9,909 nucleotides of DNA from Bugula neritina (lineage: Eukaryota > Animalia > Bryozoa), in contig CAXIUT010000040.1 in the NCBI GenBank assembly GCA_964035545.1, forward strand, positions 1 through 9,909, in the 5' to 3' direction. The translations under genes and the position numbers were made by a program. The notes under the pieces were generated by a model. It was not told the origin of the DNA and ran no database searches. It worked only from the letters and a program-made list of their open reading frames with translations. Positions 1-9,909 of the stretch are shown here, in pieces; within the stretch, counting starts at the first letter, position 1; each line of letters starts with the position of its first letter.

Positions 1-105
1 CCCAACCCCAACCCCAACCCCAACCCCAACCCCAACCCCAACCCCAACCCCAACCCCAACCCCAACCCCAACCCCAACCCCAACCCCAACCCCAACCCCA
101 ACCCC
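1..105 (+). repeat. Left telomere, (CCCCAA)n, about 17.5 perfect copies
   Basis: Perfect C4A2 hexamer array at the window start; this is the Tetrahymena-type ciliate telomere, in the orientation expected for a chromosome left end. Confidence 0.98.
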
Positions 106-270
106 TAAAGAAGATAATTTTTATTAAAGAAATCATTAATATAATTTTTAATTATTTTCTTCTCACTTCTTTGTACATTTTTTTTTTAATTACCAATAAT
201 TTTTTTTCTTTAATCTTTGTTTATTATTTTCAATTATTGAAAATATTATTTTATAAGGGAATATCATCAT

Positions 271-675
271 ATGAAGTTTACTCACAACGCAATTACTTCC
301 ATAACTGTGTAAAAAGTTGAGAATATTATTACTTCTATGACACGAGCTGGTTTGGGAGATGATACTTACAGACGGCAGAGAGATAAATAAAGATATTTAA
401 AATTTAAATCTTAACAGGCTTAAAAAGAGGACAAAATGAGAGAGTAATTTTTATATTTACGTTCTTAAAAAATTAGATTGGTTTAAGAGAGAACTTTAAA
501 GAAAAAATTACAAAGAAATAAGAAGAAAGAGCGACAAAAGCAGTTGAAAAAGAAATCTCAGCTCTTAAAAAAACTTTAAGAAAATCAATTAGAAGAGGAT
601 GATTTTTAAAGTGAAGATTAATCTCAAAAATTTAAAGTTGAAATAGCTTCAAATGAAAAAGGTTAATAGCAATGA
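271..675 (+). CDS. PRKRIP1: PRKR-interacting protein 1-like (DUF1168) spliceosome-associated protein, 134 aa with UAR=Glu
   Basis: ATG271 to TGA673-675 is open if TAA/TAG are sense. Translation ITVEKVENIITSMTRAGLGDDTYRRQRDKERYLKFKSEQAEKEDKMREEFLYLRSEKIRLVEERTLKKKLQRNKKK follows the PRKRIP1 pattern (V-x-N-x-x-G-S-x-AGAGSG-x-F-x-x-YR-x-x-RR-x-E...EF...EE-x-TAK-x-R-x-KR-x-KKK), with a divergent core. Confidence 0.75.
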
Positions 676-865
676 TTGAATTAAAATAAACTTGATATAT
701 TTTTTTGAATCAGATATTTAGTCTTCACAATTTTAAATAATTGGAGAATATTTGATAATTTATTTATATAGAAGATATTTTGGAATTAGAAGATTAAGTT
801 CATCGATGTTTTAATTTTATATTAAAAATTATAAAAGTTATCTAGTGATAAAATAATAATAATTA

Positions 866-3205
866 ATGAGATCAACATCATTGAAGAATCTTGATGATAT
901 ATATATCGAGTAGGAGTAAACAATTAATTAAAAATTTAAATAATATGTCCATTCGAAAAACAACATTATCTTACATGACTAATTACTCAGATTCACTGAA
1001 GAATAAGTGTTAATTATATCGAAAAGGTTTAAAGAATTATGCAGTAATCGATAAAATATGAATCTTGAACAGTTTAGAAAAGGTCTAGGTCTTCTTGGTA
1101 GATAAGACTCTTTTATCTGTAGAATATTTAACCTAATAGATGATAATAATGATGGCTAAATCACTTTAAAAAACTATCTTAACTATCTAAATATTATACT
1201 TAAAGGCAATGATCTTGAAAAAGCACGTTTTGGATGGTTAATTCTGACTTAGAAAAAAGGTGATATGGAATTTAAAGATTTTATTTAACTTTTTCATGAA
1301 ATATCCATTGTTTGGAATACTCTGACTGGATAAATAGTTATTCCAAAAAAAAAGTATATTGAAGAGTTATTTAATACTTTTGATGTTGACCAGGATCAAA
1401 CAATTACCTTTAATGAGTATTTTTTTTTATTATTAAGTTATCGATTATTTTTCAATTAACACTTACAGTTATCAGGATGGTTTTAGTACTTTAATGGACT
1501 TTAATATGATGAAAAAAGTTCAAAAAAGGAGTTCGAAAATGTGAGAAAAAAGATGAGAAACAAACTTTAACTTGAAGAAAGTCATTAGATAAATTAAACA
1601 TTTGATCAATTGAAAATACAGGGATATGATTTTTAATTGAATATTGAGAAAAAACTATTAAATTTAACAAAGAGTATGAGAGAAGTTGCTTAAGAAGTTC
1701 GATTAAAAAGAGATCAAATAAATAAAATATAAAGATAAGAAGAATATTATAATTCATCATTTTTTAATTTTAACTAGAATAATTCAACAGAAAAAACTAT
1801 TAAAACAGCTAGCTAATAAAACAGTATGATATCAATTAAGAGTTTTTACAAATACAATCATGAAAGTCTTTTCGAGAGTTCTATTAATAAAATTCACTTA
1901 AGAAAATAACAATTATAAAAATAAACAAAAAATACTCTTAACTATTAAATATCAAAATAATTAAAAAATTTTTTAAATAACACATATTATCTTATGAACC
2001 TATGCAAAAAATATCGATAAATAAAACTTAAATAAAGAAGATACTCACCAACTAAACTAAAACAAATGCAAGTTAAACTTCATTTAGTAAGTTAGAAAAA
2101 TTAAATGTCTGAAAAATAAGCAAAAAAAAAAATGACAGTCTACTTTGGACATTAAAATTGGAATTTAGTCCTTAATATCATGGTCGGATTGAGAAAAAGT
2201 ATAATTTCACTTTCTGGTCCTTCAAAAATCAATGAGTCTCACTTTAGTTTGAATTCACGTCATTAGTTTTATTTAGGAGCTAAAGCTTATAATAATGAAG
2301 GTCCTGAGGCTTTAAAAAATACTTAAAGTTTTTTATTCATTGAAATGTTTCCCTAAGTATTTTAAAAATTGAGAAATAAATATGGAGTTTCGAATAATGA
2401 GTATCAAAGGTCAGTTGGACCTGAAGGTCTTCTTAACCAATTACTTACTGGTGACTTGACTGCTTTAAATTAAAAGTGCTCAACTGGAAAATCAGGAGCT
2501 TTTTTTTACTTAACTTCTGATAATCGTATTTTTTTGAAAACATTACCCCAGCATTAGTTCATTTTTTTCACTAAAATCATATTCAATTATTATCAACATA
2601 TGATGGAACATTAGAACACTTTAATTGTTAGAATTTTTGGACTTTATAAATTAAAAATTTTTCAAAATAAACAAAAATTGAATACTATTTATTTCATTAG
2701 TATGTAAAATATTTTTTGGAAGGTAAAGGCATCATAAGACTGTCAAATACAAGAAGTTTACGATCTAAAAGGAAGTCTTTATGGAAGAACTGGTTCTGAA
2801 GGAGGAGAGCTAAAAGACCAAGACTGGATATAAAATAATAAAAAAATAGAGCTTCCCCAATAACTAGGAGAACTTTTTCGGGAACAAATTACAAATGATA
2901 GCAGATTTTTCAAAAAAAATAATATCAATGACTATTCTTTAATGGTAGCTTTCGTTAAATATGAAGAAATTTTAAATTCATAAGTTGAAGGAAATTTATT
3001 TAAAAGATTTTGTGGAGGTATTCTAAGCAGAAAGAAAGGTCTTCTTTATGTACTATCTATTATAGATATTTTAACAGTGTTTGAGACCAGGAAAAATTTA
3101 GAATATATTTTCAAATCTACATTTCTTAGTAAAGATGTTTCATGCATTCCTCCTTCTGAATACTGTGCTCGCTTTAGATTATTTATTAATGACTCAATCC
3201 ATTGA
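866..3205 (+). CDS. PIP5K: Phosphatidylinositol-4-phosphate 5-kinase with N-terminal NCS/recoverin-like EF-hand domain, ~772 aa
   Basis: One frame without TGA from ATG866 (alternative in-frame ATG806) to TGA3203-3205. N-terminal NCS-like region: FTEEEV..SKRFKELC, RIFNLIDDNNDGEI, FDVDQDQTITFN(D/E). C-terminal PIPK motifs: FGHENWNLVLNIMVG, STGKSGAFFYLTSD..IFLKT, TLIVRIFGLY, YDLKGS, LKDQD, NDYSL, IIDIL, VSCIPPSEYCARF. Confidence 0.95.
1417..1437 (+). other. Putative 21-nt spliceosomal intron in PIP5K (in frame, no stop)
   Basis: GTATTTTTTTTTATTATTAAG has GT..AG ends and the same size class as the required introns. Removal replaces NEYFFLLLSYR with NDYR directly after the EF-hand loop. It is not needed to keep the frame. 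Confidence 0.6.
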
Positions 3206-3260
3206 TATACTAATTTTATTATTTTATTATCTTTTAAAATAGATATTCTTTACAAACTGA

Positions 3261-5743
3261 TCATTATTTCTTCATTGGAGATTTTTGATATCCTCCATTT
3301 CCTCTTGAAAGATATCCTTCCCTACCTCTTGAAGCATATCCATCTCTTCCTGGAGATGAATATCCTTATTTAGCCTTTGATAAATTTATTTCTTTATTCT
3401 GAGAATGATAGTAGTATGAAGAATTAGAATTTCTATTCTGATTTTGATCTCGATTTTTGTTTCCATTTTAATACCCTCCTTTATTTCTATTGTGATATTT
3501 ACTTAGGTTATTATTTTGATAATTTCCTAGATTATGACTTTGATAGTTTCTTTAATAAATAGGTTGCCCAGAATTCTTTCTCTAAGTTTGATGATTTTGA
3601 CTTTGTATTTGATAAAAATGTTGAATTTCAGATGAGTTTTGATAAGGAATTTGGTTTGATTGATAACCAGGGTCACCTTTTTATAAATCTTGACTTCCTG
3701 AATAGTTATCATAAGGGATTCCTCCCATATAGTTCATAATATGAGGTCCTGAATATCTAGAAGAAGGAATCTGATAGTGGGATCCTTGTAGTGAGGGAGG
3801 ATGAGGATGAGGAGGAGGACACATATACATAGGAAAATTAATGTTAATGCTTGTGTTTCCAGCATAAGAATTTTTTGAGCTTCTACCTGTATTTGTAGAT
3901 GGAATATGAGGAACTTCATGTTTTATTTCATTTTTTATTTGAGGATTTTGCGAAGATGTTTGATGTATATAGTAGGGATAATTCCATGGATAATGTATTG
4001 GGTTTTCATATTTTTCATTGTTTTTTCCTTTTTTATTTTCAAAGGTAGCTGCTTCATATTTTCTATTTTTATTTTGAACATACTGATGATCATAGTTGAG
4101 ATAATTATAAGAAGAAGGATAGTAAAATGGATGTGAATCTTCCTGCTTGCTGTGATTAGAGTGAGGATATTAATTTTTTACTCCATTTGAGTCATTATTT
4201 TTATTCAAAGAATCAATATTTAATTGATTTCCTTGATTATTTTGAAGAGAAATGGGTATATGTTGATGATAGTAGTTATAAGATTGAATATTTCTCTACC
4301 ACTATTGTCTTTCTGCTGAAGACATTTTATCATATTTCTATTGTTTATTTGTATTAAATAACTTTACTGTTCTTTTATCTAAACCTGAGGAATAGCTGTG
4401 AGAATATTGAGAAAGCTCTCCTTATTCAATAGATTTTTTTAGACTTTTATTACTCTCTCCAAAACTATTATTCTATTTTATAGAAATAAAAGATGAAGAG
4501 GAAGAACAAGAAGAAGAACAAGAAGAAGAAGAGTATTCCTCTTGCTGTATCTATTCAATTTTAATCTTTTCTTCTATTTTTTTCAATGTTTAACATTTTT
4601 TAATCGGAGAAGATTCAATATTCTTCTTAAGAATATATTTTTTGTTTGAATTTTCTATATTTTCGTGTTATTAGTTGACAGTTGGTCTTAAAATCGTAAA
4701 TACATCTCCTTCTTGGGAAGGTAGAGGTTTAAAATCTTTTTTAAACTTTTAAAGCGAAGTCCCTCTGACAAGTTTATACCTTTCTCTTTCATAATTTCTT
4801 TACTTTCTTTATCTAGCAGCATGAATAGGATTATTTTGAGAGGCAAACATCTGCTTTCTTATAGGAGGTTCGTAAATACTCTTTTTATTTGGGTTTAGTC
4901 TTTTCTTTCCTTTGAGCGAAACGGTATCATCGTTATAAGTATAACGTGAAGAAGGTTTATGTGTAAGTTTGGGTCTAGAATCTACTTTAAAAAAAGTAAT
5001 ACCAATATCAGGATTATCTCCTCGATCACAGTCAAGTAGAGAGTTTGAATATTCTTCAGATGATCCTTATTATGCCATTTTAAGCCTTTGCTCTTCCTAT
5101 TATTCTCGTCTTTTTTCTTATTCTTCATCAGCTTTTTCTTAGCAGCCTTCCCAAAGTTCTTCATAGATGAGACAGATTTGCTTGATATGGTTATTATATT
5201 GACTGAGGTTGATTCTCTCTCGATGTTACTAAGACCGAATATGGTAGTAATAGTTTTTATATTGATCTTTGCACACTGAACATAAAGAATGTTTAGAATT
5301 TGGACGAGGAAAAATCTTAATTTTAAAATATTTACGAGTTGGTTATGTTTTTAAAGAGAGTCTCTGATTTGTTTTTGGTGATCCATGAGTTCTTGCTGTT
5401 AATTTTTTGCGAGCAGACGTTTGTCGACTCCCAATGCAAAAGCAGAAGTGAAAAACTTACAGTCATCATTGTACTCTGGGAAGGTGTGATCTGGAGGAAG
5501 AGGATCTCTTTGAAACTTTGGACAGAATTGAACTTTGATATCATATTTGGAAGAGTTCGTTTTTAAGGTTTGGAGGGAAAATATATGATCTCTACAATCA
5601 TACTCACATCTTCTTTTCCTTTTTCTCTATTCAAACTGCATCAACTTATTTTAATTATTTATACATTGATAGAACTTTTTAAATCTGTTACTTATCTATC
5701 AATCAATATAACCATCATTTAAACTACATTTGTGCGCCTTCAT
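3261..5743 (-). CDS. Dbf4-type zinc finger (zf-DBF) protein with long Asn/Gln/Tyr/Ser/His-rich low-complexity C-terminus, ~800 aa; N-terminal exon structure uncertain
   Basis: Minus-strand frame has no TGA from 5315 to the stop at 3263-3261. It contains CSVCKDQYKNYYYHIRSEEHR (C-x2-C-x9-H-x5-H, ~5220-5282), the Dbf4 motif-C spacing. It joins upstream exons via GT-AG introns 5316-5335, 5645-5664 and possibly 5691-5712. The start could be ATG at 5641, 5718, 5743 or further upstream (~5840) with other introns. Confidence 0.75.
3288..3368 (-). repeat. Imperfect 24-nt coding tandem repeat (~3.4 copies) encoding (E/D/G)GYxSRGR
   Basis: ATATCC recurs at 3288, 3312, 3336 and 3360; the peptide is EGYSSPGR DGYASRGR EGYLSRGN GGYQ. 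Confidence 0.8.
4491..4532 (-). repeat. Coding (TCT/TGT)n microsatellite encoding a poly-Ser/Cys tract
   Basis: The plus strand reads gaagaacaagaagaagaacaagaagaagaa; the minus-strand frame gives SSSSCSSSCSSSSS. Confidence 0.75.
4982..5002 (-). other. Possible 21-nt in-frame intron
   Basis: Minus strand GTATTACTTTTTTTAAAGTAG has GT..AG ends, is AT-rich and matches the size class; it is not required for the frame. Confidence 0.4.
5316..5335 (-). other. 20-nt intron
   Basis: Minus strand GTAAATATTTTAAAATTAAG; removal joins a ~100-codon open upstream exon (5336-5644) in phase 0 to the zinc-finger exon. Confidence 0.8.
5645..5664 (-). other. Putative 20-nt intron
   Basis: Minus strand GTATAAATAATTAAAATAAG lies at a phase-0 boundary of the open exon. 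Confidence 0.6.
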
Positions 5744-5880
5744 ATTTACTAAATCTTTTCAACTTCTCATCTTGCTTATTTATTTCTAAGGAAACAAATC
5801 AAATTCCTTAGTTAAAATCAAACAACATACCAGTAGACATTCATTCCTTTTTCTTAGATAAATTTTAAAATCAAATTAAA

Positions 5881-6858
5881 TCAAGCCTGCATAGTATCAT
5901 CAATTGCTTCGTCATCGTTCACTGAATCTTTAAAATTAAACAATGAAGCTATTTTGGCTGTATTAGATTCGTATTCTTGTTTTAGCTTTTGAATTTATGT
6001 CAAAAACTCTTATTTGAATGCTCCACAAAGATATTTTTTATCTTCTCCTTTTCCTTCTTTCTTAGAGCCTTCCTTAATTTCTTTTCGACTTAATATTGAA
6101 CTTCTTTCGAATGATATTTATGATTAAACAAAAAATGTTTATTACTTCTTGCCTAAATATATTTCGATACTTCCAAAACCTAACTCAAATGGCATTTTCT
6201 TTTCATGATCAAAAACATAACATTTAACTTCAAGAATCTTTAGAAGTTAATTATAATCATCATTATAGATATTTTACTTACTTTCTAAATTTTATTATTT
6301 AGAACTTAGAAGTCTACTCATAGTAATGCTTTATCCTTCAAAAGAAATAAACATCTCATAGTAAAACCAATCTATTTTCCCTTCAAAATTCCTTATTGAA
6401 CTGAGATACTGTATTTATTTAGTAAACTTTTTAAGTCTTTAAGTAAACTTTTTCTTCTCTTATTGACTCAAATATTTATCATGCTTTCTTAATCGATCTT
6501 AGACTAATTTAAAAAGTTATATTATTTTATCAACTTTTTTATTTTTGATCATTAACAAAAAATAGATAAAAAAGATAGTTGTTTCGATATGACTCGAAAT
6601 AAAAAGCTTTTTAATTCTTTTAAAATTATCTGATGAGTAGTGACTAGTAGAACTTTTATGTGAATAATTTTAATCAACCTATTTTCTTTTTTTGTTTCCC
6701 TCTTTTTCAAATATTTCAATTTATTTGATTCTTTAATATTCCATCTCAACTAAACTAAAATACCTTTCAAGAGATCTCATTTGAATATCAACAAATGGTT
6801 TAGCTTGATTTATTTTTCTGTAGAAATCTAATAACAGTTTTTGAAATTATCTTTGCAT
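5881..6858 (-). CDS. Hypothetical protein, 325 aa (UAR=Glu), no family recognised
   Basis: ATG6858 to TGA5883-5881 gives 326 codons with no internal TGA (MQREFQKLLLDFYRKINQAKPFVDIQ...DDEAIDDTMQA*), preceded by an AT-rich spacer. Confidence 0.8.
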
Positions 6859-7122
6859 TATCTTTTTATTAAAATAAAAATATAGAATGAATTGAAACTA
6901 ATCCTTCAAATAAAATAATAATAAAAATAAGAATAAGTGTTTAAGTTCAATAAATCTTTTGGTTTTAAATTAATATTTATTCTATTTATTAAATATCCCA
7001 CTTAAATATAACTAATTAAGATTTTTTGATTGTTCTCCATTTAGAGTTTTTTTTTTGTATATTTGTCTCTCTTCATTATTTACTTTTATCTATTTGATTA
7101 ATTTTTAGTAATCTATTCAAAA

Positions 7123-8032
7123 TCACATTTTATTTAAATCAAACTTTCTACAAGTCTTTATACTTTCCTTTCTCTTGAAAAAAAAATTATTCTCCTTAGA
7201 AATAGACTACAAATCGTCCTCTAATGATAGTAACTTCGCCGACAATCGAATCGATTTAAAAGATTGAATATTCAACCAACAATCTTCTTCCTTATTATTT
7301 ATCCACTTGGAACTTGATTCCATCATTGTAGATAAGTTCTCTTCTCTTTATTTCGATCGTATTTATTAAATAAATGTGACTCTTCGAACTCCTTCCTATT
7401 TCTACTCCTATTTTTAAGCATATTCAAACCTTTCTTCTCCTTCATTCAATATCTTGTATTCTCTTTCATTCATCATCTTTTATTCTCTTTTATTAGTAAT
7501 CCTTTCTCTTAAGAAAATAAAATTTTCATTTTCATCTGAATTACTATCTTCTGAAAGACTAATTTTACTTTGTGTGTTTGATGGAGTGTTAACTTCACTA
7601 ATAATTATCCTTTATTTTTCTATTTAACTCAATAAATGAGGTACTTTCTTATTTTTTTTTTCAGGTTTTCGTTTGATGAGACGAAGAAGGTCTTCTTTGT
7701 TTCTTTGGAAATAGGGATTGGTAAAAGCTGATCCTTCAGAAGATTTTACTTTAGAAAAATTATACATATTGAGCTGTATTATTGATGAATTACTTGTCTA
7801 ATAAAACTTTCATATTTGTGATGCCTAAAGTGACGAGGCAACACATTATTAGTTAGTTTCATAATATTTTTGATGATAAAACTCTTTCCTTCATGCTGCC
7901 AGGAAATAATTTATGCGTTTTAAGGATGCTTAATGGAAAATAAAATACAGATAGAATTGAGTAAGTTTTAAGAACAAAGGTTGCAATCGGCTAGAAATAG
8001 CTCTATTTATCCTCATAAAAGCTATTGTTCAT
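7123..8032 (-). CDS. HSF: Heat-shock factor (HSF)-type DNA-binding transcription factor, 289 aa as assembled, 2 introns
   Basis: After removing introns 7929-7948 and 7774-7793 it reads PIATFVLKTYSILS|HPENAEIISWQHEGKSFIIKNIMKLTNNVLPRHFRHHKYESFIRQ|LNMYNFSKVK...FTNPYFQRNKEDLLRLIKRK, the canonical HSF DNA-binding domain (SFxRQLNMY signature). It ends at TGA 7125-7123 (see frameshift finding). Confidence 0.95.
7774..7793 (-). other. 20-nt intron splitting the HSF SFIRQ|LNMY motif
   Basis: Minus strand GTAATTCATCAATAATACAG; removal exactly restores the RQLNMY signature. Confidence 0.95.
7929..7948 (-). other. 20-nt intron in the HSF DNA-binding domain
   Basis: Minus strand GTATTTTATTTTCCATTAAG; removal restores FVLKTYSILS-HPENAEIISW in frame. 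Confidence 0.93.
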
Positions 8033-8195
8033 TTCTTATTCTCACCACGACCACAATATGTTTACAAGTTATCTATTCATTAAATCAGATATCTATGTAG
8101 AACTGTTATTTAGCAAAATTGCTTTGTCAATATTTAAAAATTAAATCGTCCGAGAAATATAATGAGTGCCTCTTGCTATAATATAAAATATCTAA

Positions 8196-9242
8196 ATGCC
8201 TAAAGTAGAAACTATCATCGATTGTATTTATCTATCTAAAAAAGAACTGAGCAAACAGTGTCCTTCAAGTCTTCCAGAAGTTAGTCAAGCCTTTGAGTCT
8301 GACCCAGATCGCATTCAAGAAGCTATTAAAGTCAGAGGAAAAGGATCAGACTACTATATTAACCTCAGGGTACCTTTTATTTCTAAGCAGATCCTTGAAT
8401 ATCTTACTTTAATGAAACTTTGTTCCAAAGAACCCAAAGAATATTTAAGGCCTCTTCTCGAGATTCCAGTCAAAGATTTGAGTGGTGATTTAAGGGCGGT
8501 ATGAATTCTGATTATAAAGTAAGCTCTTTTACACATCTGTTAGGGAATTATTCATGCTGAAGACCTTTATCGCACGAATACAGTTGATAAATACATAAGT
8601 GATCTAACCAAGGTTACTCTCAATATCACTCAAATAGCCAGATTAGAAATAATCAGTGCTGGAAACAATTTTCTTAAAGGAGATTACCTGAAAGCTGCTA
8701 ATCAATATTTATCTTCAGCTCGAATGGAAGCATTTGTGAGGGATGAAGTCACAAAAACAGCTTTAGTTGAAAAAGCTATTGCTTATGCTTTTTGTTCTCC
8801 TATTAGTAGTGATTCTCATAAGGTTGTTTGTAGTCTTTGTCTCAATTAGACAGCCAAAAAAAGCAGATTTTTTCCTTTTGTTAGTAAACTCTATCGTGAA
8901 GACATTATCACAAAAGAAGAAATTAACGAAATGGCCACCAGACTAGCTAATTTAGTTCTAGAAAAAGACAGAGATGGTGTTAGTATATTGCAACAAGCAG
9001 CATTTTCTCGAAATATGATACCAATATTAAATTCTTTTTCAACAGTGAAGCTTCCAACTTTGCTTCGACTGAGTGGAGTTGCCACTTAAGATGAACTTTT
9101 GATTCTTTTGGAAAAAACATACCGCAATGGAGAAATAAGCATTGATCAAGTAAAAGGAGTAGTTTGCATCAATAGTAAAGCAGACCCTTCAGAAGCTATA
9201 AAATAATTTTTAGGACAAATAGATGTTATCCTCTCAGAATGA
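8196..9242 (+). CDS. CSN4: Divergent COP9 signalosome subunit 4-like PCI-domain protein, 341 aa, 1 intron
   Basis: Exon 1 is the supplied ORF (8196-8498). After intron 8499-8519 it reads GDYLKAANQY...LVEKAIAYAFCSP...SLCLNETAKK..FPFVSKLYREDII...DRDGVSILQQAAFSRN...SFSTVKLPTL...ISIDQVKGVV. This is colinear with CSN4 (KFLEAAQRY...LATLFKDER...LEKMYLDRII...DGSSILDRAVIEHN...IDQIDGIV). Stop is TGA 9240-9242. Confidence 0.8.
8499..8519 (+). other. 21-nt intron containing an in-frame TGA
   Basis: GTATGAATTCTGATTATAAAG; removal eliminates the TGA at 8502 and continues the PCI protein in frame. Confidence 0.9.
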
Positions 9243-9330
9243 TAACCAAAATACATTCATTATCATTATTAATAAATAATTTATCAATAAAGCTATCAGC
9301 TTGATCTTTCTTATAACATCTTAACTATTT

Positions 9331-9413
9331 TTGGGGTTGGGGTTGGGGTTGGGGTTGGGGTTGGGGTTGGGGTTGGGGTTGGGGTTGGGGTTGGGGTTGG
9401 GGTTGGGGTTGGG
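9331..9413 (+). repeat. Right telomere, (TTGGGG)n, about 13.8 perfect copies
   Basis: Perfect T2G4 array in right-end orientation, the reverse complement of the left array. Confidence 0.97.
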
Positions 9414-9897
9414 TCGAGAGGCTTCTTAAAAAAATACTAGGATAGTATGTTGAAAACTTCAGTTCTGAAAATCTAAGCATCGGTATTTGGTCTGGAGAAG
9501 TTATTCTTCGGAATATTTATCTAAAAAAATAAATCATAAAAAAGCTAAATCTACCATTTTTCATAAAGCATAGCTGTCTTGGTTATCTCAAACTCAACAT
9601 TCCTTGGAAGTCTTTGACCTCCAATAAAATATAAGTTCTTCTAGAAGGTCTTTAACTAGTAGTTTCTGAGTTATCTTAATCTAAGTGGGAGTGCAAAAAT
9701 ACAAAAATAATTTAAAAAAGAAAAAAAGAGATTCAAGACTATTGTGAGTCTGTTGTAAACTAATTCGCAAAGAAAGCGTAAAAAAATAAAGAAGGATAAT
9801 AGGGATATTTTTCAAAGTTAGTAGTTAAGATAGTTGACAATTTACAAGTAACAATAAAAAATATTCACATTCGTTACGAGGATTCAATCACCAAAGA
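9413..9897 (+). CDS. VPS13: VPS13 (chorein N-terminal domain) fragment, lacking a start codon and running off the window
   Basis: Translation [74 protein letters not shown]...[27 protein letters not shown] has the classic VPS13 N-terminal motifs. It has no ATG and is followed by a likely donor GTAAGT at 9898. Confidence 0.93.
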
Positions 9898-9909
9898 GTA
9901 AGTCTAAAT

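Follow-up and report, generated by a model that had tools for sequence, protein, structure and literature searches.

Both UAA and UAG probably encode glutamate on a ciliate-type chromosome within a Bugula neritina assembly

Positions 1 to 9,909 of contig CAXIUT010000040.1, from the Bugula neritina assembly GCA_964035545.1 (the window, meaning this whole 9,909-nucleotide stretch), carry genes that almost certainly use TAA and TAG as glutamate codons and UGA as the sole terminator, the genetic code of NCBI translation table 30, in what would be the macronuclear DNA of a ciliate. An earlier note, made from the letters of this DNA, had proposed glutamate for both codons, and the proposal agrees with the comparisons to orthologues and to distant homologues presented below. 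TAA or TAG makes up ~43% of all glutamate codons in the window genes. By analogy with other ciliates in which stop codons have been reassigned, UAA and UAG would be decoded by glutamate-type tRNAs with UUA and CUA anticodons, and the release factor eRF1, for which changes have been reported from UAR-reassigned ciliates (PMC10089648), would no longer recognise UAR (UAA or UAG); the source organism would be a peritrich.

In-frame TAA and TAG, and their exchange with glutamate codons

The six frames of the window were read with TGA as the sole stop, which gave long open reading frames (ORFs), and removal of five introns of 20-21 nucleotides (nt) resulted in seven gene models, g1 to g7 (Table 1). 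Together these contain 112 TAA and 30 TAG codons in frame, ~5% of 2,810 codons, while TGA occurs in frame at none of the 2,810, as against 52 times in the +1 and 126 times in the +2 frame of the same DNA. TGA closes each of the six complete genes. The presence of in-frame TAA and TAG without TGA is far beyond chance, and the gene models bear out the statement of the earlier note that all seven coding regions hold the two codons in frame and that the six complete ones terminate at TGA.

The 3' ends of orthologous genes in other species lead to the same terminator. In four species the orthologue of g6, and in two species apiece those of g2 and of g4, finish at the same aligned residue, in every case followed by TGA, and the alignments continue through TAR (TAA or TAG) codons situated near the 3' ends, as at TAA9204, which is paired with TAA, GAG and GAT. 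Because the TGA ends are shared and the alignments pass through TAR, these comparisons indicate that TGA is the real stop, and the only one, as had been claimed, and that TAR is non-terminating at the aligned 3'-end sites.

The individual codons that had been singled out (TAA310, TAA388, TAA2471, TAG2555, TAG8847 and TAG9443) are correctly placed and in frame, and the acidic run at 5067-5141, which lies in g3, does carry TAR among its glutamate codons, reading C x EKADEE x EKRRE x z EEQ, with x and z at the reassigned positions. The zinc-finger motif likewise contains the in-frame TAG reported for it, but its spelling requires amendment: what had been written HIRS[TAG]EH is actually HIRS[TAG][TAA]H, with two adjacent reassigned codons.

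Relatives of the window genes were found by a profile search with a stop-free C-terminal piece of the PIP5K kinase g2 and by a word-indexed search with a piece of g6, and the contigs encoding matching fragments were gathered, giving eleven loci from ten samples and, from these, seven non-redundant sequences with 22-44% GC (guanine plus cytosine). In-frame TAA or TAG was present in every aligned orthologue. Reading frames of the window were aligned to the TGA-delimited ORFs of the relatives with TAA and TAG masked as X, so that TAR could introduce no bias into the alignment, and the codon pairs were then tallied. Among the 141 partners of TAA that were not themselves TAR, 62 were glutamate, followed by glutamine (14), serine (9), aspartate and asparagine (8 each) and lysine (7); the 53 corresponding partners of TAG included 26 glutamates, then threonine (4) and lysine, serine and glutamine (3 each). 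The partner spectra were scored against the substitution pattern observed in these alignments for each of the 20 amino acids, and glutamate ranked first by 99 log-likelihood units (lnL) for TAA, 44 for TAG and 144 for the two pooled, a ranking that did not change when the flank-identity cut-off was set to 0, 0.3 or 0.5. The partner-spectrum likelihood was applied as a control to the sense codons with sufficient sampling, and it assigned 59 of 59 correctly.

The same relationship is seen from the side of the sense codons, where the fraction facing TAR in other species was 18-31% for GAA/GAG, 4-9% for CAA/CAG, ~3% for GAT/GAC and <1% for AAA/AAG. At least one GAA/GAG partner was found for 34 of the 81 aligned TAA codons of the window, compared with 12 for CAA/CAG and two for AAA/AAG. 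The glutamate signal was seen separately in g2, g3, g4 and g6. In the last of these each of the five window TAR codons faces GAA/GAG in one or more of the other species compared (up to four), TAG8541 and TAG8847 doing so in every aligned orthologue, and a 92%-identical relative has GAA both at TAA8520 and at TAG8541.

For comparison at greater depth, 36 full-length PIP5K proteins from other eukaryotes were aligned with g2, the queries being stop-free pieces from this one family. The column at TAG2555 is glutamate in 33 of 35 and glutamine in none. Glutamate occurs 13 times at TAA2471 (together with 13 glycines), 13 times at TAA2861, 10 times at TAA2363, nine times at TAA2153 (with seven aspartates) and 11 times at TAA1004 (with four glutamines). 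For the 15 TAR codons that fall in well-occupied columns, the summed column likelihood was 3.5 for glutamate, -3.1 for aspartate and -5.2 for lysine, and 16 of 18 sense codons treated in the same way as controls were called correctly. The test weakly favours glutamate, in agreement with the orthologue test and independently of the clade. In g3, the split of TAR between the charged half and the glutamine/asparagine-rich half matches that of GAR (GAA or GAG; p=0.80) and departs from that of CAR (CAA or CAG; p=0.011). Across 25-codon segments the density of TAR followed that of GAR with rho 0.15 and that of CAR with rho -0.09, which is the expected direction and not significant.

Alternative decodings

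Several points weigh against the assignment to glutamate. Scans of the window and of the eleven fetched loci detected no tRNA gene, and hence no decoder, and the exchange test presumes a code common to the window and its relatives, which do carry in-frame TAR. The comparison with distant homologues involves one family and 15 columns, with a small margin (3.5 for glutamate against -3.1 for aspartate), and TAG by itself is represented there by only three PIP5K columns, in which the amino acid is undecided. Finally, glutamine is the partner of TAR at roughly double the rate seen for GAR (odds ratio 2.0-2.1, p=0.04-0.11; 6.9% against 3.4% at p=0.04).

This last point also speaks for mixed decoding, in which TAR would be read mostly as glutamate and at times as glutamine, and a difference in the same direction is seen when only well-aligned columns are considered (glutamine partners 5.5% for TAR and 2.8% for GAR, p=0.11). 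We consider mixed decoding very improbable. The excess is marginal, in no column is the pairing of TAR with glutamine consistent across species, and mutation is enough to explain it, since a transition turns TAA into CAA but GAA becomes CAA only by a transversion. TAR also lies at slightly less conserved sites (Glu-class partners 57-64%, against 69-74% for GAR).

Glutamine as the sole meaning of UAR, as in the usual ciliate code (table 6; Tetrahymena, Paramecium), would fit a telomere repeat and an AT-rich genome that resemble those of oligohymenophoreans using that code, and glutamine is indeed the second commonest partner of TAR, with 17 of 194. We nevertheless give it next to no credence. 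Glutamate is ahead of glutamine by the full 99, 44 and 144 lnL for TAA, TAG and the pooled codons, TAR is the partner of 4-9% of CAA/CAG codons as against 18-31% of GAA/GAG, the column at TAG2555 (glutamate in 33 of 35) never has glutamine, and there are few TAR codons in the glutamine-rich tail of g3. Table 6 was rejected as a candidate on the 17 of 194 partners and the 144 lnL deficit.

The remaining variants, namely a split code with UAA as lysine and UAG as glutamate, UAR as tyrosine (Mesodinium), or codons that are stop or sense according to context, are together just as hard to credit. The split code is that of Oligohymenophorea sp. PL0344, which belongs to the same ciliate class and does read UAG as glutamate (PMC10553269), but lysine accounts for only 7 of the 141 TAA partners though lysine codons are the commonest in the window genes, and it falls outside the five best likelihood fits for TAA; the PL0344 code was rejected on the partner count. 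UAR as tyrosine was likewise rejected, tyrosine being outside the eight commonest TAA partners and making up 2 of the 53 TAG partners. Context-dependent termination could draw on g1 and g3, in which TAA or TAG is present among the three codons that precede TGA; against it stand the lack of any in-frame TGA and the alignments that run through TAR to a shared TGA end. The 3' end of g1 (664-675) reads TAA TAG CAA TGA and that of g3 (3261-3266) TAA TGA, and a reassigned codon no more than three codons from the real stop in two of six genes is not significant given that TAR is 5% of codons.

Genes, introns and telomeres of the window

Table 1. Genes, introns and telomeric tracts of the window, with in-frame TAA and TAG counts.
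Feature	Position	Strand	TAA/TAG in frame	TGA stop	Basis
Left telomere, C4A2 repeats	1-105	.			Read directly; regular-expression match
g1, 134-codon lysine/arginine-rich protein	271-675	+	11/1	673-675
g2, EF-hand + PIP5K kinase	866-3205	+	39/9	3203-3205	Pfam PIP5K E=4.9e-13, EF-hand
g2 intron, 21 nt	1417-1437	+			Edges of high-scoring segment pairs at 1417 and 1436 coincide
g3, 786-codon protein	3261-5641	-	21/9	3261-3263
g3 intron, 20 nt, frame-changing	5316-5335	-			Gene model
g4, no family named	5881-7116	-	20/1 (conservative model 5881-6858)	5881-5883
g5, HSF-type DNA-binding protein, three exons	7123-8032	-	9/6	7123-7125	Pfam HSF_DNA-bind E=1.8e-08
g5 introns, 20 nt each	7774-7793; 7929-7948	-			Spliced model in frame, ATG to TGA
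g6, probable COP9 signalosome subunit 4-like protein	8196-9242	+	3/2	9240-9242
g6 intron, 21 nt, with the only apparent in-frame TGA (8502)	8499-8519	+			Conserved site
G4T2 telomere tract closing the 9.4-kilobase (kb) chromosome, internal to the contig, VPS13 coding sequence directly after	9333-9413	.			Read directly; regular-expression match
g7, VPS13-family lipid-transfer protein, N-terminal part	9416-9907	+	10/2		Pfam VPS13_N; PDB VPS13A, VPS13C, Vps13

The family labels given in the earlier note fared unevenly. Those of PIP5K and VPS13_N were confirmed by Pfam and PDB matches, and that of CSN4 for g6 is weak: COP9 signalosome subunit 4 provides the sole PDB matches of its pieces, at E about 1, and the Pfam search with those pieces returned no PCI domain, so that g6 is described here as probably CSN4-like. 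The label PRKRIP1 for g1 was not confirmed; searches of Pfam and PDB with stop-free pieces gave no match, and the gene was left nameless.

Orthologues of g2 are present in loci L001, L002 and L005, those of g5 in L007/L008 and L010, and those of g6 in L007/L008, L009, L010 and L011. The product of g3 combines a CxxC...H(x5)H zinc-finger motif with the acidic run and an asparagine/glutamine/tyrosine-rich tail, and is aligned over 686 residues with its orthologue in L001. On the minus strand at 4784-5351, BLAST aligns two overlapping frames with L001 at length, one at 40% over 686 residues and the other at 48% over 294; we take the second to reflect shadow-frame conservation together with the true first exon. 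The alignment of g4 with its orthologue extends to 6963, upstream of the first in-frame ATG, giving a model of ~6963-5881; at the other end, the g4 orthologue in L001 terminates with TGA at the matching residue. The incomplete g7 is missing its first few codons and continues at its other end beyond the window. The order g2-g3-g4 is found in L001 (1-5203; 43% GC) and g5-g6 in L007 (1-4932) and L008 (40-41% GC), compared with 28% GC for the window; gene order and strand are thus kept between species of very different GC content.

All five introns have the form GTA...AG and are exactly 20 or 21 nt long. The site of the g6 intron is shared with L011, the 92%-identical relative, and with the more distant L010, each with an intron 20 nt in length; 20 not being a multiple of three, the intron must be spliced out in both. 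Retention of the 21-nt intron at 8499, which is a multiple of three, would end translation at its in-frame TGA; the 21-nt intron at 1417 contains no in-frame TGA.

With C4A2 repeats at 1-105 and a G4T2 tract at 9333-9413, positions 1-9413, a segment of 9.4 kb with six genes, are shaped like an entire somatic chromosome of a ciliate, capped by a telomere at either end. No description of multi-gene minichromosomes in peritrichs was found in the literature searched. The window is AT-rich (22-35% GC), and tRNA and Rfam scans of it returned no tRNA, no Rfam family and no rRNA; those of the fetched loci were likewise empty.

The internal G4T2 tract is followed by VPS13 coding sequence that lacks approximately the first five codons, and its orientation does not suit a natural left end of a chromosome, at which C4A2 is expected. 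Both sides of the tract sit on single contigs in three runs (X1, X2 and X3) from two studies, in each case 98 nt apart. It could be a telomere that became attached to a broken end, a genuine interstitial repeat, or the product of an assembly path that recurs.

Annotation and comparison with known codes

The main consequence of reading both codons as glutamate is for annotation. The standard code breaks every gene of the window into fragments, and translation with table 6 puts glutamine at ~5% of residues and in place of ~43% of the glutamates, some of them conserved in the PIP5K domain, in line with the warning of the earlier note that annotation with table 1 or table 6 would be wrong. In public protein sets the PIP5K and g6 proteins of this clade are stored only as fragments of 60-150 residues cut at TAA or TAG (P0001-P0015 and P0166-P0171), some of them labelled 'ORF type:complete'; genes called with the wrong code have thus already entered the databases. 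The closest PIP5K fragment (P0001, from a transcriptome set) matched no contig in an exact look-up. The risk of wrong-code annotation is real, because gene prediction in a recent study of seven peritrich genomes relied on a Tetrahymena-trained model (PMC12411067). The codon-exchange test used here obtains the meaning of a codon from ~10 kb and a handful of metagenomic contigs, and is useful where a whole-genome Codetta run is impossible.

The peritrich nuclear code (table 30) is used by Vorticella, Opisthonecta, Carchesium polypinum and Campanella umbellaria, and table 6, with UAR as glutamine, by Tetrahymena, Paramecium and Oxytricha, of which Tetrahymena and Paramecium have telomeres of the G4T2 type. 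Sessilid peritrichs are reported to read UAR as glutamate with UGA as the sole stop, a reassignment believed to have a single origin in the Peritrichia (PMC10553269, PMC10089648). The code proposed for the window is thus already known, both as table 30 and from the literature, and is ordinary as biology.

The earlier note had offered as the source either a peritrich or a lineage that acquired UAR=Glu independently, which is the right pair of options, and the circumstantial evidence favours the former. Very short introns of uniform length have been reported for three peritrich genomes (PMC13685798), and seven peritrich assemblies have 25-46% GC (PMC12411067). Telomere repeat, intron length and the GC range of the relatives together make the organism very likely a peritrich, on circumstantial fit. 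There is a slight chance that it belongs instead to a separate oligohymenophorean lineage with its own origin of UAR=Glu, or, as a distinct matter, that mixed glutamate/glutamine decoding is left from an ancestral UAR=Gln code. Were the lineage not a peritrich, a reassignment for which one origin is at present assumed would have arisen twice.

Set beside known systems, the window shows no difference in code from the peritrichs, in that TAA as glutamate, TAG as glutamate and TGA as sole stop were each examined and each found. It also has the oligohymenophorean-type G4T2 telomere and very short, uniform introns (20-21 nt), and the 22-44% GC of its relatives is close to the 25-46% of peritrich assemblies. 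With the ciliates of table 6 it has in common the two reassigned codons, TGA as the only stop and the Tetrahymena telomere repeat, and differs in the amino acid, which is glutamate and not glutamine. The code of PL0344, in which UAA is lysine, UAG glutamate and UGA stop (PMC10553269), comes from the same ciliate class and agrees with that of the window for UAG and UGA, whereas UAA too is glutamate in the window.

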